IMG/VR virus record: IMGVR_UViG_3300042455_001086
Span: 1 to 64,000 of that record
Reading direction: 5' to 3' (one strand)
DNA: 64,000 nt
The notes under the pieces are model-generated. The model was given only the letters and a program-made list of their open reading frames with translations. It made no database searches and had not been told where the DNA came from. Below are positions 2,727 to 63,754 of this stretch, piece by piece (within the stretch, counting starts at the first letter, position 1; the number at the start of each line of letters is the position of its first letter). The position numbers and the translations under genes are program-made.

Positions 2727-3161
2727 ATGAATTTAAATAGAATAATAAAAAAAGTTTTAAAAGAACAAGAAGAAAGGTCAACAAGATATATGTTCTTTTC
2801 TAACCTTGAGCAAATGAAAAGACAATGTGAGTTACTTCTTGACCTTGACGAGAATGAGGTAGAATCTATTTTAGAAGACGGACACGATTGGGCTCAAGAT
2901 CATATTGCTGAAGCCAAAAATAATATGGATCAAGTATTTGATTTTTTAATGAATGAAACCGAAGGTGGTGAAGATGGTGATTATGATGAGGATATGATGA
3001 TGGAAGGTAAAAAGAAAAAGAATGTTGCAACTAATAAAAAATTATGGCAACAATCTTTAGCTTGGGCTAGGGCTAGATATGATGTTTGTCCAAGTGCGTA
3101 TTGTAATGGTGCTGCAGTAAAGAGGTACAATTCTAAAGGTGGTAAGTGGACAAAAAAATAA
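2727..3161 (+). CDS. Hypothetical protein with a shared N-terminal IIKKVLKE leader
   Basis: ORF track; acidic middle and basic C-terminal domain. Confidence 0.7.
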   Translation: MNLNRIIKKVLKEQEERSTRYMFFSNLEQMKRQCELLLDLDENEVESILEDGHDWAQDHIAEAKNNMDQVFDFLMNETEGGEDGDYDEDMMMEGKKKKNVATNKKLWQQSLAWARARYDVCPSAYCNGAAVKRYNSKGGKWTKK

Positions 3162-3233
3162 TTTTTAAAATTTAATTTTTAGATTCAATTCTTTTGTTTA
3201 TATTTGTAGAATAAATCAATAAAAATATAAACT

Positions 3234-3689
3234 ATGATGTCTAAAGTTGAGAGGTTTTTCAAAAGATTAAAATTAAAATTTTACATTTGGTCAAAAAAAG
3301 GTGGTGTAAATTTTGCAAACCAAGAAGAAGAAATATCTTCTTATGAAAAGACTTGTTTTCTTATATGTCTTAAAGCAATCAAACACAAAAATACAAAATT
3401 TATGATTGCCCCAATGTCGAATAAAAGATATTTGGAGAACAAAGAAATGGATATATTCATCACAATGAATGATGGTCGAGTTGATTTAACAAATCACATA
3501 TATCACTACGATGTAAAATTATCAAAAAGAGATTGGGAACGAATTACTTATGTCTTTGATACGGAAACAGAAAAAAGAAGATTAAATTATGAGGACACAA
3601 TAAATTCTCAAATTAAAAATTCTCTACACAATATTCTAGAAAGAGTTTCTAATCTCACTGATAATTCTACCAACCAAGGAATCAATTGA
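3234..3689 (+). CDS. Hypothetical protein
   Basis: ORF track; TATATTTG promoter at 3199-3206. Confidence 0.65.
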   Translation: MMSKVERFFKRLKLKFYIWSKKGGVNFANQEEEISSYEKTCFLICLKAIKHKNTKFMIAPMSNKRYLENKEMDIFITMNDGRVDLTNHIYHYDVKLSKRDWERITYVFDTETEKRRLNYEDTINSQIKNSLHNILERVSNLTDNSTNQGIN

Positions 3690-4556
3690 TTCCTTTTTGG
3701 ATTTATATGATGTCATAACTGGTTTTTGTCCCTTACCACTTTGCGGATCTTTTTTCTCAGCTCTTCTTTTTTGTTGGCAAGCTGCTTTCTTTTGTGAATC
3801 GGACATTTTACCGGCAACACCAGCTGCTCTACATTTGGGATAAGATCCGGTGTCGGCATCTTTTCTACCACAAGGTGGATGTTTTCCATCAACTTTCCGA
3901 CAAATATCAACCCAAGGTCCCTTTGGTTGTGATGAACCCTTTGGTTTTTTCTTTTTTCCAAACCAAACCGCCAAATCTTCATTTATTGTGTGTGTGGGAT
4001 GTGTATCATCTTTTAATTTTTTAAAAAATTCTGAACCTTTATAATATGTTTTACTTTTTTTATTATTTTTTAGATTTGATTTTTTTGCATGGTGATTTGT
4101 GTGATGATCAACCACATAATCAAAAGGAGTTAGTGTTGATTTTGGCCATTTTTTTAAACCTAATGAAAATGGTCCATTAAATTCACCAGCAGTAACAGAT
4201 GAATTTGCTTCATTTATTGGGACAATTTTTTTATTTTTTCCTGGTGTTGCATTTATATTATTCCCATCGTCATCACTTGTAAAAACATCTGGGTGTTTTT
4301 TCATATAGTTTGTAACTTTTTTTGCTATCCCCTCAATTTTTTTTATTTTATTTTTAGGTGTATCCATTTTTCCATCATAACTGTCGTATTCTAACTCTGG
4401 TGAGTCATAGTTTGAAACTGGATTTATATAAGGACCATTTTGTGTGTCTTTAAATTTTCTAACTCCGGGAACCAAAGGTCCGATATAAGAACCTCTACTC
4501 CCACCAGATGATGTTGCCTCCCTTATTATTTCTTTTATCCTTATATCACTTATCAT
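3636..4556 (-). CDS. Hypothetical basic protein, putative head protein
   Basis: IKEIIRE leader, ATATTTAT motif upstream, Cys/Lys-rich C-terminal domain (GPWVDIC..PCGR..YPKCR). Confidence 0.7.
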   Translation of the reverse strand: MISDIRIKEIIREATSSGGSRGSYIGPLVPGVRKFKDTQNGPYINPVSNYDSPELEYDSYDGKMDTPKNKIKKIEGIAKKVTNYMKKHPDVFTSDDDGNNINATPGKNKKIVPINEANSSVTAGEFNGPFSLGLKKWPKSTLTPFDYVVDHHTNHHAKKSNLKNNKKSKTYYKGSEFFKKLKDDTHPTHTINEDLAVWFGKKKKPKGSSQPKGPWVDICRKVDGKHPPCGRKDADTGSYPKCRAAGVAGKMSDSQKKAACQQKRRAEKKDPQSGKGQKPVMTSYKSKKESIDSLVGRIISEIRNSF

Positions 4557-4578
4557 TATTTTATAAATATCTTAAAAT

Positions 4579-4790: not shown

Positions 4791-6092
4791 TTATCTAATA
4801 ATTTTTTTAGAAGTTCCATCTTCGTATATCTCAAATAGAACGCCTTTATATTCAAATCCTACTTCTTGTCCTAATGAATTAACATATTTAATCACTGTTT
4901 TAGTTTTGGTTTCATTATTCAAAACAATTGGTCCATATATTTTAAAATATCCATCAATATCATATTGGACTAACCTATAATAATGAATTGTAAATTGATC
5001 AATTTTATCCGAATGAGAATAATCCAAATGAGTATTTGAATTTCCAGCGGCCGGACTTATACCAATTGTTTTCCAGTCAATTCCATTTGTTGATCGTTCT
5101 ATGTCAAAATAAAATGAGTTATGTTCCGAAGCTGTTGCCCATTTTAAAACATTATGTGTAGGGTATGCAATACCTTCAAAATACAATAACTCAACTGGAA
5201 GACCAATTGGCACACTTAATGTTGCAATAAATCCACCCCAAGAACCGGTGTTTGAAACATCCGTTGTCCATCTTAATGTTAGTTCTCCGTTTGCGTTGGT
5301 TGCCGTAATATCTGCTGGTGTTGTCGTACCAGTAAGAGTCCCCACAAGTGTTGCTGAAGTGTTGGGACCATCATAAACATATAAATAATCATAATTTGTT
5401 TCCAAATCTAAACTAGTAAAAGAAAGCTTTAATTTTTTTGTCGCATCAGATGGTGTGAATGTCAATGTTCTATTTAAACCGTTTCCACCCGTACCACCAT
5501 AATTACCAGATGCTGGTCCTAGATTATCTGTTATTGTATATGTGTAATTCACATTTAGTGTTTGATTACAAGCGGCTAAAAAAGGAATTAGTGTATTTTC
5601 ACTAGCATCCGTTGATGTCAAACCCAAATCATCAACATATCTTTCAGCACTACCTGACGCTCGTTTATCAACAATTCGTATAAAAATATTTGTTAAACCC
5701 AATGCACCCAAATCAACCGAAGCAAGAGTATATGTTGTTGAAAATGATGTGACAGCTAACCGTTCAGTCCAGACTAAACCATCGGTTGAGGTTTCAACTG
5801 AAAATTTCGGAGTACCGGTTGATGTGGAACTTCTTCGGTAATAAAAACTAAAAACACCAGGATTTGCTATTTGTGGTAATCGCATAGCGTCATTTACGGC
5901 GTTAAATGTTAAATAACTCACACCAGTACGAGCCGTCGATGCTGTAGTACCATATAAAACAGATGTATTAACCCAAGTGCCTTGTTGGGTTGGTAGAGAC
6001 GATGAAAAACTTTCGTAGATAAGATATTGGTTACACTGATTAAAACCAAAAAAGGATAATGAAATTAAAAATAAAAATAATATTGTTTTCAT
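4791..6092 (-). CDS. Secreted CUB-domain protein with a Bacteroidota T9SS-like C-terminal domain
   Basis: Signal peptide; CUB motif LSFTSLDLETNYDYLYVYDG...LTLRWTTD..GF; LPVELLYFEG...YYRLVQYDIDG module; CTD-like YVNSLGQEV...KKIIR. Confidence 0.75.
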   Translation of the reverse strand: MKTILFLFLISLSFFGFNQCNQYLIYESFSSSLPTQQGTWVNTSVLYGTTASTARTGVSYLTFNAVNDAMRLPQIANPGVFSFYYRRSSTSTGTPKFSVETSTDGLVWTERLAVTSFSTTYTLASVDLGALGLTNIFIRIVDKRASGSAERYVDDLGLTSTDASENTLIPFLAACNQTLNVNYTYTITDNLGPASGNYGGTGGNGLNRTLTFTPSDATKKLKLSFTSLDLETNYDYLYVYDGPNTSATLVGTLTGTTTPADITATNANGELTLRWTTDVSNTGSWGGFIATLSVPIGLPVELLYFEGIAYPTHNVLKWATASEHNSFYFDIERSTNGIDWKTIGISPAAGNSNTHLDYSHSDKIDQFTIHYYRLVQYDIDGYFKIYGPIVLNNETKTKTVIKYVNSLGQEVGFEYKGVLFEIYEDGTSKKIIR

Positions 6093-7989: not shown

Positions 7990-9828
7990 TTATCTCAATT
8001 CTCTTAAATCAAATGTACGAACACCATCAACAGTGATACGAGCGTAGAAACGGTTATTAACCATTTTCTTCGCGTATCTTGTCATAATCCCTTTAATTGG
8101 TGTGAAATTAAATGGGTTATACATTGTAGGTGTTAATTGAAGAGGCACATACGGTGCGTAGATGTAACCTGTGTCAAGTAAAGATGTACCTTTGTGACCC
8201 AACAAGATTGTGTTTGGTGGGAAGTAAGGATCTCTATACACTTGGTAACGACCAGCTAATGTTCCAACTCTTTCAATACCCATATTGTATTGATCTTGCT
8301 CTGGAGATGCGTTAGATACGTGGAAGTATTCTAAATCATCAAAGATTGCAGAAACCTCAGAAGATACAACAATCCAGTTTGCACCACCTCTTAAAGTAGA
8401 TTTGTGGATTTGTGCAGACAATTGGTTGATTGCAGTAATCAATGTTTGGTTCCAATCTTTTTGAGTGTAAGAAGTTGTTAAGTTCAATCTTCTCCATCCG
8501 TTGTAATCCCATCTCAAAGTCCAAGCAGCACCTTTTCTAAGGTCTCTTAGGATTTCTCTGTCGATTTCAGCAGCAACTTGCTCAGAAAGTAAAGCAGTAA
8601 GTTCAGCTTCAGCGTCGATGTTATGGAATGCAGCAACATCTTGTGCAAGTTCTGGAGACCATTGAGCTCTTAATTTTCTTTCGGTTACAGAAACTGTTAC
8701 TGACTCAAGATCAAAAGATACTTCACCGATTTCATCTTGGAATTCCAAGTTTTCGTAAGTTCTATATACAGCAGTGAACGCATTTGCACCAAAACCTTCT
8801 TCATTTAATGTTGTTCCAGTATATCCATCAAGTGTGTCAGCACCACAAGTAGCACATGCTGGACAAGAAAGATCTACTTCTAAGTAGATACAACCTTCAG
8901 CATCACAGATGTCATAGTAAGAACCACCATTTCCACTATCAGGGAATGAAGTTGTTTTTTTAGAACCGTAATTTACGATTCCTTTACCATATTGTTGAGT
9001 AACAACTCTAAATAAAAGTGGTTGACCAACAACGATTTGACAAGCTTCGTCCTCAACACTAATTTCTGCGTTAGCGAAGATTTTAAGGTCAGAAAGGAAA
9101 GTTTCAGTATCAACTTCGTTTCCGTCAGGTCCGATTAATTTACCAGCACCTTCACCTAAAGTTCTAAAATTACAAAGTTGTAAAAGAACTTTTCTTACAT
9201 TAACTTTATCAAGGTAAGATTGAACAGCACCTGAAGTAGTTAAACCACCATCAGCACTCCACTTAATAACATCAGTAGCTACAGTAACTGCAGACCATTT
9301 TCCTTTTGAATAGTCAAATAAACCAGCAGGATCTAAACTAGCTTCAGCACCTTCATAAAATAAGTCATAAAGATTCTTTTTGTATGAACCAGCAGCAGGT
9401 GGATAACCAGCACCAAGAGCTTCTGGAATTTCATAATTGTTTGGTGAACCAATTGGTGGATAATGTGCGTTCCCAGCTTCAAGAGGATTATATCCTTGGA
9501 TACGAGGTACGAAGTAGAACAATTTACCGATAGGTAAGTTCATTGCTTGTACTGATACGATGTCGTTAGCTAACAATTTAGAGAAAACTCTTCTTACGAT
9601 AGGGAAAACAACTGTTTCAAAAGCTCCGTTTGAACCTTCTGAAGTTGCTTCGTTAATCAAGTGAGAAGCTTGGTTTTCATATAACTGTGCTACGTTCTCT
9701 TTTAGGTGGCCTTTAAGACCTTCTAGGAACCCTAATTTGTCCCATTTGTTAATTGTATCTTCTTTAATAACTTTAAGGTGTTTCAACCCAATGTTACCAA
9801 CAAGACCTGATTCTAATAATGCTCCCAT
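7990..9828 (-). CDS. Major capsid protein (T4 gp23-like)
   Basis: LYENQ, IVSVQAMNLP, RKLRAQWSPELAQD, EIDREI, YAPYVPL, GIMTRY motifs. Confidence 0.97.
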   Translation of the reverse strand: MGALLESGLVGNIGLKHLKVIKEDTINKWDKLGFLEGLKGHLKENVAQLYENQASHLINEATSEGSNGAFETVVFPIVRRVFSKLLANDIVSVQAMNLPIGKLFYFVPRIQGYNPLEAGNAHYPPIGSPNNYEIPEALGAGYPPAAGSYKKNLYDLFYEGAEASLDPAGLFDYSKGKWSAVTVATDVIKWSADGGLTTSGAVQSYLDKVNVRKVLLQLCNFRTLGEGAGKLIGPDGNEVDTETFLSDLKIFANAEISVEDEACQIVVGQPLLFRVVTQQYGKGIVNYGSKKTTSFPDSGNGGSYYDICDAEGCIYLEVDLSCPACATCGADTLDGYTGTTLNEEGFGANAFTAVYRTYENLEFQDEIGEVSFDLESVTVSVTERKLRAQWSPELAQDVAAFHNIDAEAELTALLSEQVAAEIDREILRDLRKGAAWTLRWDYNGWRRLNLTTSYTQKDWNQTLITAINQLSAQIHKSTLRGGANWIVVSSEVSAIFDDLEYFHVSNASPEQDQYNMGIERVGTLAGRYQVYRDPYFPPNTILLGHKGTSLLDTGYIYAPYVPLQLTPTMYNPFNFTPIKGIMTRYAKKMVNNRFYARITVDGVRTFDLRELR

Positions 9829-9910: not shown

Positions 9911-11410
9911 TTATTTTATTTTTGTCATCAAATCTTTCATTCTCAAGAACTGAGGATTTTCATATGTTTTTGATTCAATCAAATTAACAGCAGATCCAGA
10001 AGCAGGTGCTTTAGATACTTTTCTTTCAATTGACTCATTTAATGAAACACCTTCAGTTAATGAAGTGTTAGAAATTTCATTTTTGATGATTCTATAAAGA
10101 TTTTTAGATTCTTTTAAACTTTCAACATCATCAAATCTTCTTAAAATATTGATTTTTTCTTGTTTAGTTGTTGAATGTTCTGTGAATAATCTTGTAGCGT
10201 AAGCCAAGTTAGAGTTAAATACTGCAACCTCATTTAATTTAGTTCTGAACAAATCAAGAGCTTTTTTGTATTCATCATTTTTACTTCTTAATTCTTCAAC
10301 TTCTTCTTTTAAATGTTTTGGAGCAGCCATTAAACCTCTTTTAACTTTTCTGTCAATTGATTTAACGAATCTTGAAGCTTCTTTAGCTTCAACCTTTTTT
10401 GGTTTTACTTTAAAATCACCATCAAGATTTTCACCATCTTTGTACTCAAACTTTGCTTTACCGGTGCCAACAGCTTTAGTACCTTTACCGAATGCCTCTT
10501 TTTTCTTTTCGTCAAATCCACCTTTAGTGTTTGAAGTGTAATCTACTTTTTTAACTTTACCAATTCTACCTTTTGGTTTGAAAGATTTAGATTCGTACAT
10601 TACTTCTTCTTCCATTTCTTCCTCTTCCAATTCGTCCATTTCAATTTCGTAAATTGTTTCTTCTTCAGCTTCAAAGTCGAAATCGTCCATATCATCTTCT
10701 TCTGAGTCAAGGTCGTCCATATCATCTTCTTCTGAGTCAAGGTCGTCCATATCATCTTCTTCTGAGTCAAAATCGAAATCATCCATTTCAAAAAGTTCTT
10801 CATCTTCGTCTTCTTCCGAATCAAAAATATCAGACATATCTTCTTCTTCTTCTTCTTCTTCAGCTTCAAAGTCGAAATCATCCATATCTTCCCACTCTTC
10901 ACTAAACATTTCTTCTAATTCTTTTTCCATGTTCTCTTTTTCTAATTGTTCATTTATTTTAATTATGTATTCTTCATCACCATCGTTAAGTGTTATAATG
11001 TTGTCATCTTTTGTAACAACAATACCATCACTATCTCCCATAGCTTTGAATACTTTTAATACCTCAGCATCAGATGCTCCGGTTAAATCCACTGTCTCAT
11101 CATCATCAGCAGGTATTTCTTCAACATCGTCCATACCTAATTCATCACCTTCAATGTCAGCCGAATCACCATCAATCATTTCCGGTTCTTCACCTTCCAT
11201 ATCTGGCTCTGCTACCATTTCTGGTTCCGTAGGTTCAACTACTGTTTCAGGGTTTTCAATCTCCTCTTGTTCCATAAGAGATTCTTTTACTAGAGAACTG
11301 ATTTCTTTCTTCATTGTAGATGAAAGTATTCCTTCTGCATTTTTGTTAATAGCTTGTTCAACATTTTTAATCTGTAACAAAGCTTCTTCAACCATTGATT
11401 TTTTACTCAT
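9911..11410 (-). CDS. Prohead core/scaffold protein (gp22-like)
   Basis: Lies between protease and capsid genes; extremely acidic; coiled-coil C-terminus; many L/I-x-E sites. Confidence 0.8.
   Translation of the reverse strand: MSKKSMVEEALLQIKNVEQAINKNAEGILSSTMKKEISSLVKESLMEQEEIENPETVVEPTEPEMVAEPDMEGEEPEMIDGDSADIEGDELGMDDVEEIPADDDETVDLTGASDAEVLKVFKAMGDSDGIVVTKDDNIITLNDGDEEYIIKINEQLEKENMEKELEEMFSEEWEDMDDFDFEAEEEEEEEDMSDIFDSEEDEDEELFEMDDFDFDSEEDDMDDLDSEEDDMDDLDSEEDDMDDFDFEAEEETIYEIEMDELEEEEMEEEVMYESKSFKPKGRIGKVKKVDYTSNTKGGFDEKKKEAFGKGTKAVGTGKAKFEYKDGENLDGDFKVKPKKVEAKEASRFVKSIDRKVKRGLMAAPKHLKEEVEELRSKNDEYKKALDLFRTKLNEVAVFNSNLAYATRLFTEHSTTKQEKINILRRFDDVESLKESKNLYRIIKNEISNTSLTEGVSLNESIERKVSKAPASGSAVNLIESKTYENPQFLRMKDLMTKIK
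10683..10770 (-). repeat. 3 x 30-bp coding repeat (DSEEDDMDDL) in the scaffold gene
   Basis: tcgtccatatcatcttcttctgagtcaa repeated with a 30-nt period. Confidence 0.9.
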
Positions 11411-11777: not shown

Positions 11778-12563
11778 TTATTTATCAAGAAAAGATGAAA
11801 GTTTATCCATTAATTTTTTTGTCTTATCAAGACTTTCTTCTTCCATTCCGGAAATTCTCTGATTTCTAATTTTATTTTCTTCATCCAGATTCTCTTCAAA
11901 TTTGTGTCGATCACCCTTATCCAAAAATAAATAAGCACCAGGTGTTGATGGTGATGATACAAGGTCAAAACATATTAATTCAAAATCGTCTTGGACTTCA
12001 TTTTGTTCTCCAACTTTTTTTAAAGATCCCACACCACGAGAAGAAATACCCAAAGTAACCCCTTGTCTTAAATAATTGGCGGCCATATCCCCCTTTGTTG
12101 ATACAATTCCTCTTTCGTGAAAACCAGGTGAGGTAAGTAATTTTAATTTACCCAACAATACTGGTCCATCCCACCAAATATCAGTAATTATATGCGATAC
12201 TCTATCAAGGTCAATTAAAGAAGATTCTGGGTGATTAAGTTCGGAAAGTGATGTTCCCTTCTCAATCATTTTTTTATAATTGTCGGCTTCCCTTTTTAAT
12301 ATTTTTTCCGGATATACCCTTCCATTTCTATTTGGTGTGTTATATTTTTGTAAAACAGCGTAGAATTCAAATGGTTTTGAGTGGTCCAAAAATGATTTTG
12401 ACTCCATTATGAAATGGTTATTTTCACTCTTTGGGTTAATATAACCGGCGTCGTATTCGATAAGAATTAATTTTTTATTTAATTCGTTCTTTGTGTTTAT
12501 ATACATTTTTTTATTTAAATTTCCATTTATATCCACCAGCACTCTTTCGTTGATTATTTGCAC
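11778..12563 (-). CDS. Prohead protease (T4 gp21-like)
   Basis: NRNGRVYP, ELNHP, RVSH, LGISSRGVGS, FDLVSSPSTPGA. True start uncertain (possibly MYINTK). Confidence 0.93.
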   Translation of the reverse strand: MQIINERVLVDINGNLNKKMYINTKNELNKKLILIEYDAGYINPKSENNHFIMESKSFLDHSKPFEFYAVLQKYNTPNRNGRVYPEKILKREADNYKKMIEKGTSLSELNHPESSLIDLDRVSHIITDIWWDGPVLLGKLKLLTSPGFHERGIVSTKGDMAANYLRQGVTLGISSRGVGSLKKVGEQNEVQDDFELICFDLVSSPSTPGAYLFLDKGDRHKFEENLDEENKIRNQRISGMEEESLDKTKKLMDKLSSFLDK

Positions 12564-13487: not shown

Positions 13488-13670
13488 ATGTTAATAGTAA
13501 ATGTTAAAAAGGGTGGGATTGAAAGGGCTCTAAAGGAATTAAAAGGTAAGGTAATTAAAACCAGACAAAGCTCACATCTAAACGAAAGAAAAGAATACAA
13601 AAAAAAATCTGTCATAAAAAGACAGATTTTAAATAAAGCAAAATTTAAACAAAAGTTTTTAAATTTATAA
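13488..13670 (+). CDS. rpsU: Ribosomal protein bS21
   Basis: MLIVNVKKGGIERALKELKGKVIKT...ERKEYKKKSVIKR matches bS21. Placement among head genes is as described for bS21 phages. Confidence 0.9.
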   Translation: MLIVNVKKGGIERALKELKGKVIKTRQSSHLNERKEYKKKSVIKRQILNKAKFKQKFLNL

Positions 13671-14378
13671 TTCTTTTTCCAGTTCTTTTAATTTTAAATA
13701 ATTTAACTTATCAAAATTTTCAGTTTGAACTTTATTGATTGTTTGATCTATTTTACTCAACACCTCATTATCATTTTCCTTTTCTTTGAGTTCTGTTAAT
13801 TTCTCAACAATCGTTTCTTTTAATAAATCAAATTTTACTTGTAGTTTGTCGTCAGATTCTTTTAAAACATTTTTTACTTTTAGTTTTTCAGATTCACTTA
13901 ATGTTGATAAATAATCATTTATTGTTTTATTCCCAACCTCAACTAATTCTGATAATGATGTATTAATTTCCACCTCATCCTCTGATTTTTTTTGTAAATT
14001 TTCCAAAATTAAATTTTTACTTTTTAATTTGTTTTCTAACAGAGAAACATTAGATGAGAATAAATTATCTATATCTTCATAATTATTTTTACCTTTTATT
14101 TCATTAGTCCAAAGTTCAAGTTCTTTAATTTCGTTTATTGTAATTTTATTTACAGTATTTTCAAATACAATAATACATTCGTTAATAAAACTTTCTGCCA
14201 AATTTTTGTCTAGACCTTTATTTGATGAAAGTTCATCATAAAGAAAATATAATTTTTTGATGTTTTTATTTTTCAAAACAAGTTCTTCAAAAACAAACAT
14301 TTGGTCTTTAAATGTGTTATTTGTGAAACCTTCTGTTAGTATATTTTCTATTCTACTTTTTATTAAACCAAATTTCAT
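13665..14378 (-). CDS. Hypothetical coiled-coil protein
   Basis: ORF track; ATATTTAT upstream. Confidence 0.7.
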   Translation of the reverse strand: MKFGLIKSRIENILTEGFTNNTFKDQMFVFEELVLKNKNIKKLYFLYDELSSNKGLDKNLAESFINECIIVFENTVNKITINEIKELELWTNEIKGKNNYEDIDNLFSSNVSLLENKLKSKNLILENLQKKSEDEVEINTSLSELVEVGNKTINDYLSTLSESEKLKVKNVLKESDDKLQVKFDLLKETIVEKLTELKEKENDNEVLSKIDQTINKVQTENFDKLNYLKLKELEKEL

Positions 14379-23451: not shown

Positions 23452-24726
23452 TTATAATCCCAATTGAGAAAGAATATCATCATCTTCTTCGTCCTCTTCT
23501 TCGTCTTCGTCATTTTCTTCTAACTCTCTTACAAGTTCATCAACCATTCTTTGTATTTTTTGTTTTCCAGATGGTTTTTCTTCTAAAATTTCCTTAAATA
23601 AGTCAAAAAATTCTTTAGCCGGCATAGCACTTATTTTACTAAAAAGATATAGTTGAATGTGTTTTTTATCTTCATCACTTAAAATGTCAATTGGATATGA
23701 TCTTTGTAATAATTCCCAAAATACTGGACCTAACTTTAAATCCCAAGCTTCAGCTGGAACTGTATCTTCAGCTGCCATAACCATTTCAGCTTGTCTTGGG
23801 TCATCTGGTAATCCTTGTGTCCCAAGTATTTCGTGAACACCTTTAATAAGTTCATGAACTAATGTCGGAAAATTAACTCCTCTTGCGATTACTGTTGGTG
23901 GATCTGTTGTATCGTCAATTTCTGATGTTCCAGCTTCACTACCTCCTTGTGCTGACATTGCGGCTAAAGTTTGTTCTGGATACAACCAGTATAAGTGGTC
24001 TATAATAGCAGTTGATAAACTATAATATTCAATTAAATCTGGGTGAATGTCATTTAATTTTTCTGAAACCAAATGATACATATATTGTCCCTTTTTTGCT
24101 GCACCACCAATAAGAGCGTTAATCATTCTTCTTTTTGCTCTCTCCATATCAAAATTATCCATAGCATCCAAAAAAGCCTCAACATCATTTTCGTGTTTTT
24201 GCGCATTTTTAAATGCTTGTGTCATGTCTTCTCGTGAAGGTTCTTCAGCTTGTCTTCTCATTCTTTCATTTGACTCACTTTGACCCATACCAACAAGTTT
24301 TGCGTCAAATTGTAATTGTCCCGAAGGAATACCCAATTCTTTTTTAACCAATTCAACGGCCATATTTTCAAGATCTTCTTTATGTTGAGATTCAATTCTT
24401 GAAGTTTGGTTGATTGCTTGTGAAACCAACATCAATAAACTCACCATAGGATTACGACTCGTAAGTTGAGAAGTTGTTCCGGTTGTTCTTTGTAGAATAG
24501 TTCTTAATTTACTAACAGTATCTTTAAACCTTTTTGAAGAAATAAGTTCAACAAAATCTCTATCCATTTTTGGCATTGCCGGATGTTTTGAATATGGAGT
24601 TTCCTTACCCAATATTTTTCTTTCAATACTTGGATCCATTCTTTCTGGACCGTCATAATCAATCGGAGCTTCTTTTAAAACTCTTTTTACAATGTTGTCA
24701 ATTTCTCTATTTGTAATATTTCTCAT
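23452..24726 (-). CDS. Conserved virion-module protein with an HExxK metalloprotease-like motif
   Basis: IVKRVLKE leader; FPTLVHELIKG..E. Confidence 0.65.
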   Translation of the reverse strand: MRNITNREIDNIVKRVLKEAPIDYDGPERMDPSIERKILGKETPYSKHPAMPKMDRDFVELISSKRFKDTVSKLRTILQRTTGTTSQLTSRNPMVSLLMLVSQAINQTSRIESQHKEDLENMAVELVKKELGIPSGQLQFDAKLVGMGQSESNERMRRQAEEPSREDMTQAFKNAQKHENDVEAFLDAMDNFDMERAKRRMINALIGGAAKKGQYMYHLVSEKLNDIHPDLIEYYSLSTAIIDHLYWLYPEQTLAAMSAQGGSEAGTSEIDDTTDPPTVIARGVNFPTLVHELIKGVHEILGTQGLPDDPRQAEMVMAAEDTVPAEAWDLKLGPVFWELLQRSYPIDILSDEDKKHIQLYLFSKISAMPAKEFFDLFKEILEEKPSGKQKIQRMVDELVRELEENDEDEEEDEEDDDILSQLGL

Positions 24727-28745: not shown

Positions 28746-30668
28746 TTACCAAATGGGACAATTAGTTTTTCTTTTTGGTATTACCGCTTTATTTCTAGTA
28801 ACAGCTCTTTTTAATCTTACAAAAGCAATATGTCTTGCGCTTTTTCTTTTGTTTGGTCCGTCACCGATATTTATATTTATATCCCAATTTATACTTGTCC
28901 AAGTAATCATAACACCCAATCCACCAGAAGTAGATACCACAAATTCTAATTCTTTCTCTTCTTTTGAAACCCCTTTTGGTGCTTCTATTGACATATTAAA
29001 TCCACAAGTTGCGTATCTAAATTCACTATATAAATTTTCATACTCTTCTGTCAATGCTACACCACCAATTTGTACGCCAGCCAATTTACTTGCATTTCTA
29101 ACAGCATTTCCGTCTCTTACACCATAAAATTGTCTTGGTGTTAAATTTGGGTTACGAGTACGAGCCTTCAAATATAATGGTGCGTTTGCATAAGCTGTTT
29201 TAAAATCCATTGGTGTACCATCTAAAAAAGTACTTTCTGTGTTATTCCAACCAGGACCTCTATTAGGATCTGATAAATCTAAAACCGTTATTTTTTCAAA
29301 AACATTTAATTCAGAATTATCGATAATTTCATTTAAATACTCTTTCATAGTCGCAATCCTATCAAGAGATAATGGTACATTATTGGTTTCCGAATATTCT
29401 CCTTTTTTATCTGAATATGCGGTTCTAACTTTACTTGTTGATGAATAAAAATTTAAATACAAACCTTTAGGTACTGCTTTATTTCCAGAATCGGCCATAA
29501 TTTTTTTGTATTCAGCAACAGCTTCATTTACTTTTTTCTGAAGTTCAGTTTTAGTCTCATCAGTTAATGTTACATCATCATCTTCAAAAAAGTTTCTGGA
29601 AATTTCATCTCTTTGTTCAACATTCATATTTTCTGGCGGCCAACTATATGTTGTTGTAATTAACTCAACACCAGTTTCATCATCCTTTTTCTTTTCTTCT
29701 TTATATTTTGATAAAACAGAAACATCAGCTGATTCAATAACAATATCTTTGGCTTTGATAATCATATCACTTAAAGTTGGGTTAATACCTCTAAAAAACC
29801 CATCCAAAAATGCTTTGTTTTGTAATTGTTTTCCAGCTTCAGTAGTCAATGTTGCAATAATACTTTCTTTATATGGTTCAACTTGTTTTTTTGAAAGTAC
29901 AACACGAGAATCACTTTCAGCCGAACTTCTTAAATCAACACCTTTTAAATATCCATTTATTTCATTTCCAGTCAATGACCCATAAGTTGGACTTTCGTAA
30001 TCTACTGAATATTGTACATCAGACCCAAAAGCACCCAATATGTGGTTCATTAGATTTATAATTTCATCACTTGTTTGTGTTGACATTATAACATTTTTAG
30101 AATTAAATGCCGTTAATTCTGTTAATAATCTATCCACTTGTTTTTTCATTTCAACATATAAACCCTGATTTACAATTGTAGATAGTTTAGTTTTTACTTT
30201 TGTAAGTAAATCTAATGCTTGTTTTTGTTTTATATTAGTTTGCTCTGTTGAAGAAGTTGTTTGGTTGTTTGAAAGTTTTTTTGTTTTATCAAAACCAGAA
30301 AGTGTTGATGCGTCTACAACTTTATTTAATGTTGTTTCAGGACTTTGTCCAATTCCAGATGTTAATTCATTACCAAGCCAATTTTTAAGAGATTGTCTGG
30401 TTTCTGATGAATCATTTTGTTCAAACCATTTTAACATCGCAAGATAAACTGGTGATTTTGAAAAATTATTTCCAGCATCTACTTCTTTTATATATTGAAT
30501 TATTTTTATAATATCGGCATTCTCAAATGTTTTAGAACCACCGTCAGTCCAATCTGTTACTTGTTCTTTTATTAACCAAGTATTTTTTTGTTCTGAAATA
30601 ACCTTACCCGGTTTATAGTCAAAATAGAATTTCATTCTATTTATTTCTTCTAAAATATTTTTTTTCAT
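28746..30668 (-). CDS. Large hypothetical protein, putative internal/ejection protein
   Basis: ILEEINRMK..ISEQ leader; possible OmpA-like segment (NVPLSLDRIATMKEYL). Confidence 0.6.
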   Translation of the reverse strand: MKKNILEEINRMKFYFDYKPGKVISEQKNTWLIKEQVTDWTDGGSKTFENADIIKIIQYIKEVDAGNNFSKSPVYLAMLKWFEQNDSSETRQSLKNWLGNELTSGIGQSPETTLNKVVDASTLSGFDKTKKLSNNQTTSSTEQTNIKQKQALDLLTKVKTKLSTIVNQGLYVEMKKQVDRLLTELTAFNSKNVIMSTQTSDEIINLMNHILGAFGSDVQYSVDYESPTYGSLTGNEINGYLKGVDLRSSAESDSRVVLSKKQVEPYKESIIATLTTEAGKQLQNKAFLDGFFRGINPTLSDMIIKAKDIVIESADVSVLSKYKEEKKKDDETGVELITTTYSWPPENMNVEQRDEISRNFFEDDDVTLTDETKTELQKKVNEAVAEYKKIMADSGNKAVPKGLYLNFYSSTSKVRTAYSDKKGEYSETNNVPLSLDRIATMKEYLNEIIDNSELNVFEKITVLDLSDPNRGPGWNNTESTFLDGTPMDFKTAYANAPLYLKARTRNPNLTPRQFYGVRDGNAVRNASKLAGVQIGGVALTEEYENLYSEFRYATCGFNMSIEAPKGVSKEEKELEFVVSTSGGLGVMITWTSINWDININIGDGPNKRKSARHIAFVRLKRAVTRNKAVIPKRKTNCPIW

Positions 30669-39733: not shown

Positions 39734-40192
39734 TTATCTAAGACCCTGGAATGGTTTTTTTTGTGAAGATTGTTGTGTTCTTCCATGTGCCGAACCTTGA
39801 GCTGAGAGTGTTTTAACTCTTTCTTCTGGGTTAAACTGTTGTAAATGTCTATTTATTTCACTTATAATTTTATTTTGTTTATCAGCAAAACCAAAAACAT
39901 TCATACCATAACTTACTTCTTCCATATCCGTTGAGATGTAAGATCCTATTGTGCTATATCCAAGTTTTTTTACGGCAGCCAAAGCTTCCATATAATCAGC
40001 TTTATTTTTGATCATATATACGGCGTTTAAAACACCTCTCTCATCAGTACCCAAACCAGCTATTCCTTTTTTAATCGCATTAACAGCATTTTGTCCGTTT
40101 CCTTCATTTAGAAGACTTGTATTATTTTCATTAATCACTCTTTTTACAATTCTCACCAAATCTGACTCAGTTAATTTTACTATTTTTTTCAT
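39734..40192 (-). CDS. Protein with LTESDL leader and an annexin-like repeat
   Basis: MKKIVKLTESDLVRIVKRVINE; IKKGIAGLGTDE. Confidence 0.7.
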   Translation of the reverse strand: MKKIVKLTESDLVRIVKRVINENNTSLLNEGNGQNAVNAIKKGIAGLGTDERGVLNAVYMIKNKADYMEALAAVKKLGYSTIGSYISTDMEEVSYGMNVFGFADKQNKIISEINRHLQQFNPEERVKTLSAQGSAHGRTQQSSQKKPFQGLR

Positions 40193-40252: not shown

Positions 40253-41812
40253 TTATCCGTAAGTTTCCTCACTTCCTTCCTTATCAGTTGTTCCAACACC
40301 TTTAGTTATTGTTTTAGTCCCGGCTTTAGTTGCCCCTATAATTTTTTCAGCTTTCTCAATCCCAGTTTCAGCTTTTTTAATACCTTTTGCTAACTTTACA
40401 GTTTCTTTTCCGGTTTTTTTAGTTCCTTTTACAGAATGTGTAGCAACAACACCATTCATAATAACATCAAAAGTGTCACAATATGTTTTACCAGCTTGAC
40501 AAATCAAGGGTCTTACATTTTCTGTTGTTGCATTAGAACCAAGTTCAAATATTTTATCTTTAATCCAACTAACAGTTTTTTCATTTAACTTACTCATTAT
40601 ATCTTTACCCAGAACATTTTCAATGGATTGGAATATTGGTCCTAAATTTGTTTTTGCGTATGTTGTAAAATATGCTGTTCCCTTTTGTAGTAATGTTGTT
40701 GTTTTTGGTATTGTTTTGGTTACTACTTTTCCTGCTGTTCCTTTTATTGCATTTACAATCTCATCCAAAAAAGCTGTAATCTTATTTAAAGATCCCAATA
40801 ACATATTACCAAAATTCTTTAGAAAGGATAATTTTGTAATTAACCAATTTACACCTTTTTTAATACCATCAATAACCCACTTTGCACCACCGGCGATTTT
40901 ACCAATAATACTATTAAAAAATTGACTTAATTTTGGGAATTTTTGTGCCATTTTTCCAAAAAAACCAACTGCGGTTTTTTCAGCACCAAGAACTGCTTTA
41001 GTCCCTTGTAGTGGTTTTAAAGAGGTCTGTAATCCAATTCCAGACAATAATAATGAAAATGTGTCTAAAATTGCATCAAAAAAACTACCTTTACCTTTAT
41101 CCATTTGAACAAAATCCCAAGCTGTTAAAGCACCATAAATTAACATATTTGCCGCTTGCCCACCTGGTATAGCGGTTAAAATTAATGTTGCAACAGTTCC
41201 ACCAATACCATTTACAATATCCCTAAATCCTTCCATTATTTGTTCTAAAGATAAACTTCTTAAAGAATCAATTGCTTTATCAGCACCTTTTACTACCATA
41301 CCAACTGGTGTATATCCCACAACCTTTAGTAATACATTTCTATTGGCGCCGGCATAACCCATTTTCTCAAGATTGTTCCAGATATTACCGTATTCACTAT
41401 CAAAATCACTCATTTCCGCATTCAACCAAGACTTTAAATTTGGATATTGTTTCCAACTTGCGATATACTTGTTTAAAGCATCAAGAGTTTCTTTATTCTG
41501 AATTTTTTTGATTGCAGCTAAAGCTACACCCTCATTCGTTCCATCATTATCTTTTAGATCCTTATCACCATCCATATCGAAGGCTTTCATTAATTCACCA
41601 AAAACGGCATAAGCTGTTTTATTAGCACTTGCTTGGATTTTTTGTTTTGCTGCTTGGATTTGTTCTGGTGTTAATTGTTGAGGTTGTGTTTGTTCAAATA
41701 TAGTTTGCTCGGATATTTGAACTTCTTTTTGGTCTTCGATACTTTTATTAATATCAAAATTCATTAAGTAGTTAATTCTATTGACCTCTTCTATTAATAG
41801 GGATTTTTCCAT
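40253..41812 (-). CDS. Putative internal/ejection protein with an annexin-like repeat and hydrophobic helices
   Basis: LIEEVNRI leader; GTNEGVALAAIKKI; Gly/Ala-rich helices. Confidence 0.6.
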   Translation of the reverse strand: MEKSLLIEEVNRINYLMNFDINKSIEDQKEVQISEQTIFEQTQPQQLTPEQIQAAKQKIQASANKTAYAVFGELMKAFDMDGDKDLKDNDGTNEGVALAAIKKIQNKETLDALNKYIASWKQYPNLKSWLNAEMSDFDSEYGNIWNNLEKMGYAGANRNVLLKVVGYTPVGMVVKGADKAIDSLRSLSLEQIMEGFRDIVNGIGGTVATLILTAIPGGQAANMLIYGALTAWDFVQMDKGKGSFFDAILDTFSLLLSGIGLQTSLKPLQGTKAVLGAEKTAVGFFGKMAQKFPKLSQFFNSIIGKIAGGAKWVIDGIKKGVNWLITKLSFLKNFGNMLLGSLNKITAFLDEIVNAIKGTAGKVVTKTIPKTTTLLQKGTAYFTTYAKTNLGPIFQSIENVLGKDIMSKLNEKTVSWIKDKIFELGSNATTENVRPLICQAGKTYCDTFDVIMNGVVATHSVKGTKKTGKETVKLAKGIKKAETGIEKAEKIIGATKAGTKTITKGVGTTDKEGSEETYG

Positions 41813-53091: not shown

Positions 53092-53598
53092 TTAATCTTC
53101 AATACTATCAAGTAATTCCACAACAGCATCTACTGATTTTTCTAACGCCTTTAAATTTCTTATTGTTACATCATCTTCTACCAAATCTTCTAAATCCCTA
53201 ACTTTATCATAAGCAGATTCCAAGTCATTTAATATTTCATTAAGATCTATATCGTAATCTTCAAAATCACTTTTATGAAGTTTAACATCTTTTTCTTTAT
53301 AAGATTTAACTAATTGTTTAATAGTGCTTAATGTTTTTTTCATTTTAATAAAATCATCCATCAACCCTTCAGCAACTTTATATTGACTATGTTCAAAAGA
53401 ATCGCCTTTTATCATTGTTTTTAATTTACCAAATGCGATCATCATTCTACCAATACCATTGAATAATCCCATAGTAATGTTGTTTGCGGTTTTTCTGACT
53501 TTCAAATCTTTTTTTACACTTTCATAACCACCTTCGTTGATTACTCTTTTAACAATTCTTGTTAAATCTGATTCTGTTAATCTTATTACTTTTTTCAT
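53092..53598 (-). CDS. LTESDL-leader protein
   Basis: MKKVIRLTESDLTRIVKRVINE. Confidence 0.7.
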   Translation of the reverse strand: MKKVIRLTESDLTRIVKRVINEGGYESVKKDLKVRKTANNITMGLFNGIGRMMIAFGKLKTMIKGDSFEHSQYKVAEGLMDDFIKMKKTLSTIKQLVKSYKEKDVKLHKSDFEDYDIDLNEILNDLESAYDKVRDLEDLVEDDVTIRNLKALEKSVDAVVELLDSIED

Positions 53599-53767: not shown

Positions 53768-54277
53768 GTGAAACGAACAATAAGACTAACCGAATCTGAA
53801 TTAATTAATGTAATTCAACGAGTAATTGAAGAATCAAAAGGTGGAAATTTGATGGAAGATGTCAGACTTTTATTTGTCACAATGAATCTTTTTATTCCTT
53901 TAATTGAAAAAGATGGAAAAAAATCATTAGATTACAATGGTGAGATTAAATTTTCTATACCAAAAACTAAAATGGAACAAGACCCTAAAAAAACTGGTTC
54001 GTGGTGGGACGGAAAAAAAGTTAAAAACCTAAGTATTGACATCGCTGGTGATGAGAAATATATGATATTAAAAGAACTTACAAACGACACTAATCAAATT
54101 TCTGGTGTTGGTCCTAGGGTTAGTGAAATTGTTAGACCAAACTCAAATGGTTCATCTGCTCTTTTTGGTTTAATAGGTAAACAAATTGATGGTACAAAAA
54201 ACAAACGTACACAAGTTAATTTTAATGATGGTCTAGTATATGGTGTCGTTAATTTTATAGCAAAACCAACCCAGTAA
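53768..54277 (+). CDS. LTESEL-leader protein
   Basis: MKRTIRLTESELINVIQRVIEE (GTG start). Confidence 0.7.
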   Translation: MKRTIRLTESELINVIQRVIEESKGGNLMEDVRLLFVTMNLFIPLIEKDGKKSLDYNGEIKFSIPKTKMEQDPKKTGSWWDGKKVKNLSIDIAGDEKYMILKELTNDTNQISGVGPRVSEIVRPNSNGSSALFGLIGKQIDGTKNKRTQVNFNDGLVYGVVNFIAKPTQ

Positions 54278-58260: not shown

Positions 58261-58291
58261 TATATTTCTTTATTATGTTTGTTAATCGTTA

Positions 58292-59292: not shown

Positions 59293-59306
59293 CCTGGGGA
59301 TTTTTT

Positions 59307-59729
59307 TTATTTATTTCTTTTTCTACTTTCTGACATTGTTCCAGGACTAAATGGTGATCCAGCACCTAATCTTCTTTTTGGGTCAGAATGACGAGGAACC
59401 CATTTAACATATTTGTCTTTGTTACCAACAATTTCCCATCTTCCTCTATAATTATCTTCTTCAGCTTGACGCATAAGGGATTCTTTTTTTCTATCCCAAT
59501 TATCATAAAACACATCTTCTTCTGGTATAGAGTCTAATTCAGATTTTAAATCATCACGCTTAGCATCTTTTTCTGATTCATCACCGTAACCAGTAAAACC
59601 TCTTTTAATTCCTTTTCCTAAATCACCAAAGAAACCTTCCTCTACTTCAACATCTTGTTGTTCTTTGATTATTCTCTCAACCAAATGAATTAGTTCTGAT
59701 TCGGTTAATCTAACTATTTTCTTTCCCAT
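59307..59729 (-). CDS. LTESEL-leader protein
   Basis: MGKKIVRLTESELIHLVERIIKE. Confidence 0.7.
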   Translation of the reverse strand: MGKKIVRLTESELIHLVERIIKEQQDVEVEEGFFGDLGKGIKRGFTGYGDESEKDAKRDDLKSELDSIPEEDVFYDNWDRKKESLMRQAEEDNYRGRWEIVGNKDKYVKWVPRHSDPKRRLGAGSPFSPGTMSESRKRNK

Positions 59730-60641: not shown

Positions 60642-60996
60642 ATTTTTTATTGTTTTAATTGATTACAATACAAAGATATATGTTTTATTTGGATTTACAA
60701 AACATTTTTTGAAAAAAATATTAAATTCTTTTAAGATTTGATATGGTCATCACTAATATGAACTCATTGTATAAATTCTTTATTACAGTTAATACAGTTT
60801 GATTTTTTTATTTTACCATAGTTATGTAGTTTAAAATCAATAGGTAAATTCTTCATTTTTTTTAAAGTTATACCTAATTTATTTGCAATTTTTTTTATAT
60901 ATGTATCACTTACAGAATAAATTCTTCCTATTTCTCGATAAGATTTACCATCAACAAAAATTAATCTTTCTAAATCTTCTTTATTATATTTTTTTG

Positions 60997-61069
60997 TATC
61001 CCTATCAGGGTTCGAACCTGAATAATTTCTTTAGAAGAGAAATATGTTATCCAGTTACATCATAGAGAC
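60997..61069 (-). tRNA. tRNA-Arg(UCU), second solitary copy
   Basis: TTTCT-CTTCTAA-AGAAA. Confidence 0.87.
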
Positions 61070-61251: not shown

Positions 61252-61461
61252 AGCTTATCTTTTTTATTCAATTATGAGTAATTGATTTTGTTTTGTCAAA
61301 TTAAATATTAAATTTTTAATCTTTTTTCCCTTAACCAAATCTAATATAAAACAAAATAGGAACCGAAGTTCCTACTTTGCTAGATAATTAACACCTCCTT
61401 CTTTTGTTGGTTTATCCTTACCGGACAACTACATCCAGTAAGTGTTTTTGAGACATTATCC

Positions 61462-62868
61462 TTATCTCATTGTTTTTCTTTTTATTTCTTTCAAACTCAA
61501 TCTAATGTTTCTTGAAAGAGATTCCTCAAGTTGTGTTCCTGCTTGTTGTGATGCTTTATTTTCTTCGGCATTAGGGCTAAATCTATTTGTTGATGTATTT
61601 AATTCTCTTAACATTGTTTCATAATCTTTTCCACCAACACCAAGGAAACCTTTTAGATTTACTCTACCACATTTTCTAACCAATTTTTTTAATGTTGTTA
61701 AAGTATCAAAATATTCATTCTCACCACCTTTATAATTACTACTATAAGTTTGGTTCATTGAATCAGCACATTCAGCGTCATCATTAGATGCCATACAAGC
61801 ATGTAATACTGTTATTGCAGCTCTACACGAATCTTTATCAGCATATTGACTTTGGACATCTTTTATTGCTCTTTTAGCTTGTCTTCCAGATGCTGAGGTT
61901 TTTACAAATTCTTTATAATCTGAAACATTTATACCTTGTTTTCTAGCATCTTCTTTTTGTTTTGCATTCATCGGCCATATTTGTCTATCACCCTCAATCT
62001 CATTTGCATATTTTAATAAGACTTCATCACAATCACCACCTTGACAAAGTTTTTTAACTGAAGTTGGGTTTTTCGCCTCCTGTGTTCCCGGTAATGCAGC
62101 GTCTCTTGTATAACCCATTCTTTTTAACATACTCTCAACTTCATCTGGAATATCAAAACCTCTTTCTTCCCCACCTAAACTCACCCAAATAAAATATTTT
62201 CCTGGTTCTGTAAATTCTTGTTTTAAACCATCCAATGATGTTTTTTTAATATATTGTTTTTTATCATTTACACCCATACCAGTATTCAAATCAACAGGTT
62301 CATATAGTGTTCCGATTCCAGATTTTGGTCTAACTTTTGTATAACTAAAACCGGTTTCTTTAGCACCACTCGGACCAACAAGTTCATCAACTCTAATTGA
62401 TTGCTCAGCAGAAAGATTTTTAACATCAGACACAAAACTTTCACCTCTTTTTAATTCTGGACATACTAACTGATTTTCAGAATATGGTTTTTCTTTATTT
62501 CCAGTATCTTGTTTTACAAGTAAAAAAGCTCCTTTTGAATTTCTTTTGGCAAATACAAAAAATCTAAGATCATTTAACATAAATGATACATATTGGTCAC
62601 CGGCGTTGACATTATTAACACCAGAATTTCTTAATTTTTGAATATTCTCTGGTTTAATATTTCCGATTTTACTTATATTTTTAGCCCCTTTATTCGTTAA
62701 ACAACCAGCAGGTCCTGAAATCCAGGTTAGCCATTCTTCTGGTGTTTTAAAAGAAATAGCACTATCTTGTTCATTTAATATTTGTTCAGAAATAAGTGGT
62801 TTTACATCACCCATTTTTGTTTCAAGAAGTCCAAGCATTCTTTTAATTTCTAAATTAACATTTTTCAT
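61462..62868 (-). CDS. Putative internal virion protein
   Basis: LLETKMGDVKPLISEQILNEQ leader. Confidence 0.6.
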   Translation of the reverse strand: MKNVNLEIKRMLGLLETKMGDVKPLISEQILNEQDSAISFKTPEEWLTWISGPAGCLTNKGAKNISKIGNIKPENIQKLRNSGVNNVNAGDQYVSFMLNDLRFFVFAKRNSKGAFLLVKQDTGNKEKPYSENQLVCPELKRGESFVSDVKNLSAEQSIRVDELVGPSGAKETGFSYTKVRPKSGIGTLYEPVDLNTGMGVNDKKQYIKKTSLDGLKQEFTEPGKYFIWVSLGGEERGFDIPDEVESMLKRMGYTRDAALPGTQEAKNPTSVKKLCQGGDCDEVLLKYANEIEGDRQIWPMNAKQKEDARKQGINVSDYKEFVKTSASGRQAKRAIKDVQSQYADKDSCRAAITVLHACMASNDDAECADSMNQTYSSNYKGGENEYFDTLTTLKKLVRKCGRVNLKGFLGVGGKDYETMLRELNTSTNRFSPNAEENKASQQAGTQLEESLSRNIRLSLKEIKRKTMR

Positions 62869-62887
62869 TTTCTTATATATTTAAATT

Positions 62888-63754
62888 TTATAATTCACCA
62901 CAAATATCAGAAATATCGGATGTGGTTATTTTACTTTTTTTAATTTCACTTTGAACCAATTTATCAAGTTCATCATCATATTTACCTGTTTGTTCAAGAC
63001 CTAAACATCCTTGAAGTTTTTTAATCTGGCCACCAGAAATTCCATCTTTACATCCTTTATAAAACTCACCAGAACAAACAACATAAGATAGATCATCATC
63101 TTTTTCCGTTTCTGAACCCTTATTACCCCCACCTGGATCACGAAGACCTTCGTCCTCTTTGGTTTTATTTTCAATTTTTTTATAACCTGGAACATCTCCA
63201 TCAACTTCCATTGTTTTCTTTACAGCACCTGATAAACCATTCATTACAATTGTGTCAAAATTTTGATAAACCTCATCCATCAAAACTTCACCCAAGTCTT
63301 GAGTATAAAGTTTTTCATATTCTTTTTTAACTTTACAATAATCACCAATTGATCTTATTTTCTTTAATAATTTTGTTACAGTTTCATTATATGTTCCCCA
63401 ATCCATCCCCAATGTGTACCAATCACTCCAATTAAAAGACTTATTTAATTTTTTTGCAATATATTGATAATCATTTGGGTTGTTAAATGTTTTTAATTTA
63501 CTAGAAGTTGGTATATCACACCCTTTATTGATTTGACTAAAAGCATCTTTACTTTTTTGTCCGGTTAATGAATCCCAATTTTTATAAAGTGCCGCAGCAC
63601 CACCAGCCGCAAGACCAATACCAAGTAATGTCAAAAAAAACTCGTTTAGTGGTTCTTTATCCTCCTTTAGATACAATTGGTTTGTTGCTTTTTTGTGCAT
63701 TTCAAGGATTCTCTGTTTCTCATATTGATCCAAAAAATATAAAGGTTTTTTCAT
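62888..63754 (-). CDS. Putative internal protein: TM, annexin-like repeat and PG-binding-like tail
   Basis: EKQRILEMH leader; WGTYNE..YEKLYTQDL; IKKLQGCLGL..TGKYD. Confidence 0.55.
   Translation of the reverse strand: MKKPLYFLDQYEKQRILEMHKKATNQLYLKEDKEPLNEFFLTLLGIGLAAGGAAALYKNWDSLTGQKSKDAFSQINKGCDIPTSSKLKTFNNPNDYQYIAKKLNKSFNWSDWYTLGMDWGTYNETVTKLLKKIRSIGDYCKVKKEYEKLYTQDLGEVLMDEVYQNFDTIVMNGLSGAVKKTMEVDGDVPGYKKIENKTKEDEGLRDPGGGNKGSETEKDDDLSYVVCSGEFYKGCKDGISGGQIKKLQGCLGLEQTGKYDDELDKLVQSEIKKSKITTSDISDICGEL

Follow-up and report, generated by a model that had tools for sequence, protein, structure and literature searches.

Recurrent N-terminal leaders on unrelated proteins of a lake jumbo phage are probable capsid-targeting propeptides of the T4 type

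Why should proteins that share nothing else begin with nearly the same 22 residues? This question is raised by the stretch studied here (referred to as the window), the first 64 kb (64,000 nucleotides) of IMG/VR record IMGVR_UViG_3300042455_001086, a single virus record of 257,166 bp with 30% G+C and the size of a jumbo phage. A sequence-only reading of the window had noticed such N-terminal leaders and proposed that they are modular tags for loading diverse cargo into the phage head. The model for this proposal is phage T4, whose prohead protease gp21 cleaves after L/I-x-E and whose internal proteins are diverse, sharing only a capsid-targeting sequence (CTS) of 10 amino acids, which directs them to the scaffold core before being cut away (PMC9026906, PMC3012670, PMC8442874). 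Judging from the sequence evidence assembled below, we consider it probable that the leaders are T4-like capsid-targeting, protease-removed propeptides, a system that would have grown to several interchangeable classes, with cargo families numbering in the hundreds, in uncultured jumbo phages of Bacteroidota.

Four open reading frames (ORFs) of the window start with the leader that we call type A. The matches previously reported at 40192, 53598, 53768 and 59729 all coincide with ORF start codons, and a profile built from the copies, the kind of check that had been suggested, placed each strong match at an ORF start (E values of about 1e-13 to 3e-16 against 2,027 six-frame ORFs). The leader of ORF 39734-40192 (40127..40192, minus strand) comprises 22 residues, is defined by both profile match and orthologue alignment and precedes an annexin-like cargo. 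Those of ORF 53092-53598 (53533..53598, minus strand; E 3e-16) and ORF 53768-54277 (53768..53833, plus strand; E 7e-13) follow the same pattern, and the leader itself argues for the GTG start of the latter ORF, while ORF 59307-59729 has a 23-residue form with an extra Gly2 (59661..59729, minus strand; E 2.5e-14). Shorter forms had been claimed at 2727, 4556 and 24726, two of which stand. ORF 2727-3161 begins with the second half of a type A leader ending in L-K-E (2727..2765, plus strand; E 4e-6), and its orthologue in another phage bears the full type A leader; ORF 23452-24726, adjoining the terminase gene, carries a short leader with the same end (24670..24726, minus strand; E 2e-7). The weak third form, recognised by its N-terminus on ORF 3636-4556 shortly downstream of the block of capsid genes (4518..4556, minus strand), ends in I-R-E and is insignificant alone and thus only suggestive; an orthologue in the relative G005 bears a clearer leader of the same kind.

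The second pattern, described as (E)EIxR(M/I)…ISEQ at 30668, 41812 and 62868, turned out to be a real family, here named type D, with 51 N-terminal matches in this genome and related loci. Its members in the window, all on the minus strand, are the leaders of ORF 28746-30668 (30591..30668, ending …ISE|Q), ORF 40253-41812 (41708..41812) and ORF 61462-62868 (62785..62868), and the family also takes in a type D-like leader of ORF 62888-63754 (63662..63754). All four were assigned by N-terminus and type D profile and, except for that at 62868, by clustering. As had been stated, the leaders of all 11 window ORFs end in L/I-x-E, a motif with a background frequency of 1.5% per residue.

Across the whole genome the earlier count proved too low, since leaders of four related classes are present on some 33-45 of the roughly 340 genes, whose bodies are otherwise unrelated. 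An all-against-all comparison of the first 32 residues of the 343 predicted genes revealed two large clusters of 24 and 15 genes with unrelated bodies. Class A is the 22-residue LTESDL leader (MKK..RLTESDL.RIVKRVI.E), of which four further strong copies lie outside the window, all at ORF starts, giving 8 in this genome and 8-17 per complete relative. Class B is a 14-residue leader ending in ILREE, class C reads MKIIITESQ…L and class D mostly ends in ISEQ; the classes other than A measure 13-35 residues. An (I/L)-T-E core near the start is common to A, C and D, and an (I/L/V)-x-E end to A, B and D. Neither Pfam nor PHROGs assigns a family to the leaders, to the scaffold candidate described below or to most of the cargo. 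Three proteins share another N-terminus, MPLK.DKLIA[ST]E, on unrelated bodies (window 23034-23318, minus strand; genome 77383-77817 and 77843-78400, minus strand), which from its sequence may be a fifth shared module, one without L/I-x-E at P3-P1.

Several observations indicate that the leader is a module maintained at the protein level. Identical residues of the eight in-genome type A copies use the same codon in only 55% of cases and the upstream DNA is unrelated, from which we conclude that selection acts on the peptide and not on the DNA. Recent duplication or gene conversion and chance were considered as the origin of the copies and rejected in view of the profile E values, the differing codons and the unrelated upstream DNA. 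Among orthologues, the leader is about 90% identical and the body about 50%, with a linker of 0-20 residues between them; the orthologues of ORF 39734-40192 exemplify this with a near-invariant leader, a variable linker and a domain of about 50% identity. An AlphaFold2 model of this protein predicts a leader helix at residues 9-26 and a low-confidence linker before the folded domain. The leader helix is amphipathic and net positive. Furthermore, homologous cargo bodies in different phages bear different classes (A/C, C/B-like, C/D, A/short) or no leader at all, and such swaps mean that the classes behave as equivalent, exchangeable tags. One example is a lysin-like protein with PG_binding_1 and GH19 domains (genome 94481-95479, minus strand; L002 10481-11479), which bears a type C leader; a homologue in another phage bears a type D leader, and other homologues have none. 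The cargo of 39734-40126 (minus strand) looks, by sequence, like a single annexin-type repeat domain with a G-x-G-T-D-E motif. Its top Foldseek matches are annexins, but with E > 0.4, and the Pfam Annexin match (8e-5) is to one leader-bearing IMG/VR protein not established as a homologue of ORF 39734-40192. The sequence-only reading was therefore right about a modular tag, and its capsid and protease part has gained new but indirect support from sequence.

The type A leader is widespread in viral sequences. Its pattern matched at least 587 IMG/VR stretches, at least 430 of which were confirmed, and in a word-indexed search of proteins more than 100 sequences shared nothing but the leader, with 77-96% identity. 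The leader logo, cargo clusters and start counts were derived from the best 80 IMG/VR loci, in which 186 of 195 profile matches start with Met and at least 135 distinct type A proteins form 109 cargo clusters (median length 129 residues). The Glu at the leader end is invariant in 135 non-identical leaders, P3 is I, V or L in 99% (I 88%, V 8%, L 3%), with some preference for Q/N at P1'. Information amounts to about 3-4.3 bits per position over 22 positions, of which 2-10 were constrained by the search pattern and 11-22 were free, and falls below 0.8 bits after the invariant Glu. Nearly all type A cargo lacks a Pfam family, with single cases of thioredoxin, PG-binding, annexin and DUF domains. 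Some proteins contain two leader copies: in P0067 both end in I-N-E, and in L021 ORF 681-1106 the internal copy is diverged and lacks I-N-E. A diverged leader variant with three extra residues, first seen in Bacteroidales bins, is present in rumen/gut-type jumbo phages of up to 413 kb. The literature searched contains no mention of the leader motif, and leader sequences, conservation, number and host range are undescribed there; the principle is that of T4.

The link to a head protease begins in the window itself, whose minus strand holds a T4-type head module of terminase, portal, S77 protease, scaffold candidate and Gp23-family capsid protein. The order portal, ORF237, ORF155, protease, scaffold, capsid protein is kept in 7 complete or near-complete relatives and, in this phage as in those, mirrors T4 genes 20-67-68-21-22-23. 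The presumed processing enzyme is a Peptidase_S77 prohead protease of the T4 gp21 family (11778..12506, minus strand; E 2e-22), which is 68-80% identical across the 7 relatives and has a conserved L-I-E close to its own N-terminus. Of 20 long contigs that carry a type A leader, 19 encode an S77 protease, including 6/6 of those at least 90% complete, and so do 13 of 22 contigs with the rumen-type variant, again including 6/6 complete ones; hence all 12 complete leader-bearing genomes tested, from two diverged clades, encode it. A 412-kb rumen phage has four leader genes interspersed between its protease, gp68-position, portal and terminase genes.

Comparable conservation breaks are found in the head proteins. 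The first 60 residues of the major capsid protein (Gp23 family; 7990..9828, minus strand) are near-invariant in eight phages and end in L-I-N-E, after which a variable Ser/Thr/Gly stretch follows. The acidic scaffold candidate at the gp22 position (9911..11410, minus strand), proposed from position and composition only and having no family match, has a conserved N-terminal block that ends …LVKESL(N/M)E|Q, which resembles the leader end, and then a hypervariable acidic region. Leader A ends in V-I-N-E-Q at its own break, so that the same tripeptide stands where conservation stops in leader, capsid protein and scaffold, as a shared L/I-x-E processing site would produce. Alignment to T4 gp23 was tried for locating the capsid maturation site and abandoned, as the N-arm is unalignable, which leaves L-K-E44, L-Y-E51 and I-N-E60 as candidates; we favour I-N-E60 for the sole reason that conservation breaks there. 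When residues 1-60 of the 39734-40192 protein were modelled together with the S77 protease, the predicted complex had an ipSAE of 0.00, which counts neither way.

Cargo that resides in a prohead together with an active L/I-x-E protease should avoid that motif. Genes were called in this genome and in 82 related loci; after removal of the leaders we grouped the bodies into clusters, kept one member of each and took per-protein shuffles as the expectation. The observed/expected ratio of [LI]xE was 0.83 in cargo (confidence interval 0.73-0.93; 195 clusters) versus 1.15 in other proteins (1.10-1.20; 583 clusters), with a permutation p < 0.0005. No difference between cargo and other proteins was seen for [LI]xD, [LI]xK, [LI]xQ, [LI]xN, [VM]xE, [FYW]xE, [LI]E or [LI]xxE, and in an unbiased scan of all 260 testable i/i+2 pairs none was more depleted in cargo than I.E (z = -4.0) and L.E (z = -3.3). 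The depletion persists when only this genome is considered (0.79) and when the controls are matched for length, and the rumen-type clade replicates it (0.77 versus 1.18), L.E being the most depleted of 135 pairs. Within the head module, [LI]xE is 2-fold enriched in the gp67-position coiled-coil protein and low in the portal (0.70) and the gp68-position protein (0.58), although these ratios are not independent because the proteins are orthologues.

Based on these observations, we propose the following mechanism. The short amphipathic N-terminal helix would dock a freshly synthesised protein onto the scaffold core or the shell of the prohead as these assemble, with the four interchangeable classes, recognisable by the (I/L)-T-E core and/or the terminal (I/L/V)-x-E, serving as docking tags. 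Once the shell has closed, the S77 (gp21-family) protease would cut after the invariant Glu and free the cargo within the head, from where it would presumably be ejected along with the DNA. That the leader proteins bind the prohead core, are cleaved, reside in virions and are ejected is what we infer from the pattern described above. The cargo proteins, mostly small with a few enzymes among them, plausibly include host-takeover or anti-defence proteins. A more far-reaching statement, which we put forward tentatively and would judge at somewhat below an even chance, is that Bacteroidota jumbo phages of lakes and of rumen/gut use a few interchangeable N-terminal address codes, on at least a tenth of their genes and on hundreds of unrelated families, for capsid loading and delivery into the host.

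A number of points weigh against capsid targeting. It would make about 12% of all genes head cargo, far above T4, and the cargo has a median isoelectric point of 5.6, equal to the proteome median, and is not basic as the T4 internal proteins are. The type A leader measures 22 residues (other classes 13-35) versus 10 in the T4 CTS and has no significant similarity to it; comparison by eye revealed only the starting M-K and the final I-x-E as shared (PMC8442874). The GH19/PG-binding cargo matches a relative's annotated endolysin. The co-occurrence of S77 protease and leader may reflect common descent, as the two phage clades are related. Searches of 50,697 phage records, by megablast with the portal-terminase region and by tblastn with the whole protein and with the leader alone, brought up no cultured relative. 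Copies of the leader variant also occur in a chromosomal context in five Bacteroidales/Prevotellaceae bins (L098, L100, L101, L104, L105), in none of which an S77 protease was found. An IS1595-family transposase gene directly adjoins the variant gene in three of these (L101, L104, L105), and the IS1595-linked copies could be captured phage cargo genes; the protein in L100 is homologous to a head-module gene of the 412-kb rumen phage (L193 7425-7919), which suggests that the copies in bacterial bins may have been captured from phages. A further point concerns the motif ATATTTAT, which most leader genes had been said to follow. It precedes 6 of the 11 window leader ORFs exactly, often lies, promoter-like, 12-14 nucleotides before the leader-gene ATG, is 10-fold enriched upstream of genes (78/343 genome-wide) and is 5-fold commoner before leader genes than before others (22/43 versus 51/300, p = 3e-6). 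Copies of it stand before the genes for capsid protein, scaffold, terminase and sheath as well. The same motif heads the replication operon (SSB, RecA and DnaB homologues) and several homing endonuclease genes, and was therefore rejected as a marker of late promoters and late genes.

Four other explanations have to be weighed against this background. The leader might be a protease-removed propeptide with no role in packaging, which masks or tethers late cytoplasmic proteins such as the GH19 lysin until the prohead protease frees them. The (I/L/V)-x-E end and the L/I-x-E depletion require nothing beyond exposure to a protease, prohead proteases of the T4 type are able to cleave host proteins in the cytoplasm at a late stage of infection (PMC12991175), and one cargo is indeed lysin-like. 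We nevertheless think this unlikely, since the 22 residues before the site are conserved far beyond what a cleavage site needs, an excess that implies a binding partner, and since the leader genes of the 412-kb rumen phage are embedded in its head module and targeting and cleavage are coupled in T4. Extreme conservation, which implies a conserved partner, also speaks for a helix that is retained uncleaved and docks or oligomerises accessory proteins onto a conserved hub unrelated to the capsid; this hub might be a ClpB-like AAA+ ATPase, but also a membrane or some host machinery. In favour of such a role, the helix is amphipathic and net positive and is joined to the cargo by a flexible linker, a ClpB-like gene is conserved nearby in relatives, and there are copies in bacterial bins without the protease. 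Retention, however, leaves unexplained why an invariant Glu stands at the exact end of conservation, why this end matches the breaks in capsid protein and scaffold and why cargo is depleted of L/I-x-E in a Glu-specific manner, and we rate this explanation, too, as improbable.

An export or secretion signal, that is, a helix recognised by a transporter as in double-glycine bacteriocin leaders, could be entertained because some cargo is peptidoglycan-binding. The helix, however, is followed by K-R-V-I-x-E and not by Gly-Gly, and it lacks a Sec-type hydrophobic core (maximal 12-residue hydropathy 0.2-0.9 versus 2.7-2.8 for the genome's own signal peptides). The leader is nearly missing from bacteria and archaea, with 11 confirmed matches, all in metagenome bins, among 185,579 species genomes, and export gives no reason for the avoidance of L/I-x-E, all of which makes it very improbable. 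Even less credence is due to the idea that the shared 5' coding sequence acts on the mRNA, for example as a translation-initiation context tied to a phage bS21, or that it stems from recent duplication or gene conversion. The head module does contain a bS21-like gene and the leader genes often have the promoter-like motif before their ATG, but codons differ freely, the upstream DNA is unrelated and between phages the peptide keeps about 90% conservation where the bodies of the orthologues have only about 50% identity. Capsid targeting followed by removal thus remains the explanation that we favour.

The remaining features of the window concern the head module and its surroundings. The large terminase (19487-22492, minus strand), assigned by family match, contains an intein (LAGLIDADG), and the gp20-family portal (14400-18422, minus strand) contains an HNH insert at about residues 94-412 and an intein at about 472-895, both absent from the 7 relatives. 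The candidate coiled-coil core protein at the gp67 position, mentioned above for its excess of L/I-x-E, lies at 13665..14378 (minus strand). A 578-residue homing endonuclease gene (6186-7922) directly follows the capsid gene and a GIY-YIG-like ORF (12511-12927) adjoins the protease gene. Outside the window, the N-terminus of a 138-residue ORF (genome 106891-107307, minus strand; L003) resembles the N-terminal (delta-like) domain of the capsid protein, as if it were a free-standing copy. The bS21-like ribosomal protein gene (13497-13643, plus strand) scored 26.1 bits, just below the Pfam cut-off of 27, and lies on the opposite strand within the head module, which fits the freshwater Bacteroidetes 'bS21 phages' described by Chen et al. 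2022 (PMC9723584). By its predicted host and provenance, the virus is a lake jumbo phage of Bacteroidota, and its DNA was seen in lake and freshwater metagenomes of many studies, with no fewer than 14 lake runs among them. Classical signal peptides ending …FSQ/NSQ, typical of Bacteroidota and in line with the predicted host, occur at window 4791-6092 and 54278-54700 and at genome 74813-76773. Flavobacterium phage immuto, whose capsid protein is 41% identical, has no type A leader.

Elsewhere in the window, a ClpA/ClpB-like double AAA+ ATPase of 749 residues (33325-35574, plus strand) has the same neighbours in a 259-kb relative (L011). A GOLLD RNA (Rfam RF02032, 321.6 bits, full model) was identified at 41915-42325 (minus strand), probably reaching to about 42850. 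Within 39500-45400, contigs of four freshwater metatranscriptomes cover only 41864-42848, that is the GOLLD RNA, and leave the leader genes there uncovered, which has no bearing on when these genes are expressed. Finally, 24 tRNA genes lie at 45454-61069 (minus strand), including one call with a four-base anticodon 'actt' (48647-48726) and one tRNA-Ser with anticodon ACT.

If capsid targeting holds, a profile search with the leaders would list the head-carried and probably injected proteins of uncultured jumbo phages, and a search for anti-defence and host-takeover functions would do well to begin with this leader-bearing set. In addition, the leader would provide a ready tag for loading foreign proteins into the capsids of Bacteroidota phages, as the T4 CTS does in E. 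coli, and, should the leaders indeed function as address codes, the injected proteins of uncultured phages could be read directly from sequence. The depletion of a protease's own site in cargo offers a general sequence-only test for residence in a protease-containing prohead, which could be extended to other phage groups.

How, then, do these leaders compare with known systems? Their first 16 residues resemble what we take to be the double-glycine leader pattern, L-[ST]-x-x-[ED]-L-x-x-I, likewise an amphipathic N-terminal helix in which hydrophobic and acidic residues would be similarly spaced. Unlike the double-glycine (peptidase C39) bacteriocin leaders, however, they show no Gly-Gly after the helix in the logo, occur in a viral context and precede cargo that avoids L/I-x-E. 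Encapsulin cargo-loading peptides are likewise short terminal tags on flexible linkers that bring unrelated cargo into an HK97-fold shell; they are usually C-terminal, uncleaved and without a protease, whereas the present leaders are N-terminal and proposed to be cleaved. Among giant phages of the phiKZ type, about 19 or more head proteins of phiKZ, 201phi2-1 and SPN3US are processed after Glu by a diverged gp21 homologue at S/A-x-E sites, several of which can occur in one propeptide, and no conserved transferable leader has been described (PMC9026906). The likeness extends to jumbo size, Glu-ended sites and a gp21-family protease, and the double leaders of P0067 and L021 recall the redundant cleavage sites of phiKZ-type propeptides; here, in contrast, P3 is occupied by I, L or V, and the leader forms a module of high conservation in its own right. 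The closest correspondence is with T4, where the CTS of IPI, IPII, IPIII and Alt, removed by gp21, is also an N-terminal tag ending in L/I-x-E on unrelated, mostly small and fast-evolving cargo, and where a gp21-family (S77) protease accompanies a gp20/gp21/gp22/gp23-type head module. The cargo here differs in not being basic. Further differences from T4 are the four interchangeable leader classes, the tens of cargo proteins per genome, the hundreds of cargo families in metagenomes and the Bacteroidota hosts.

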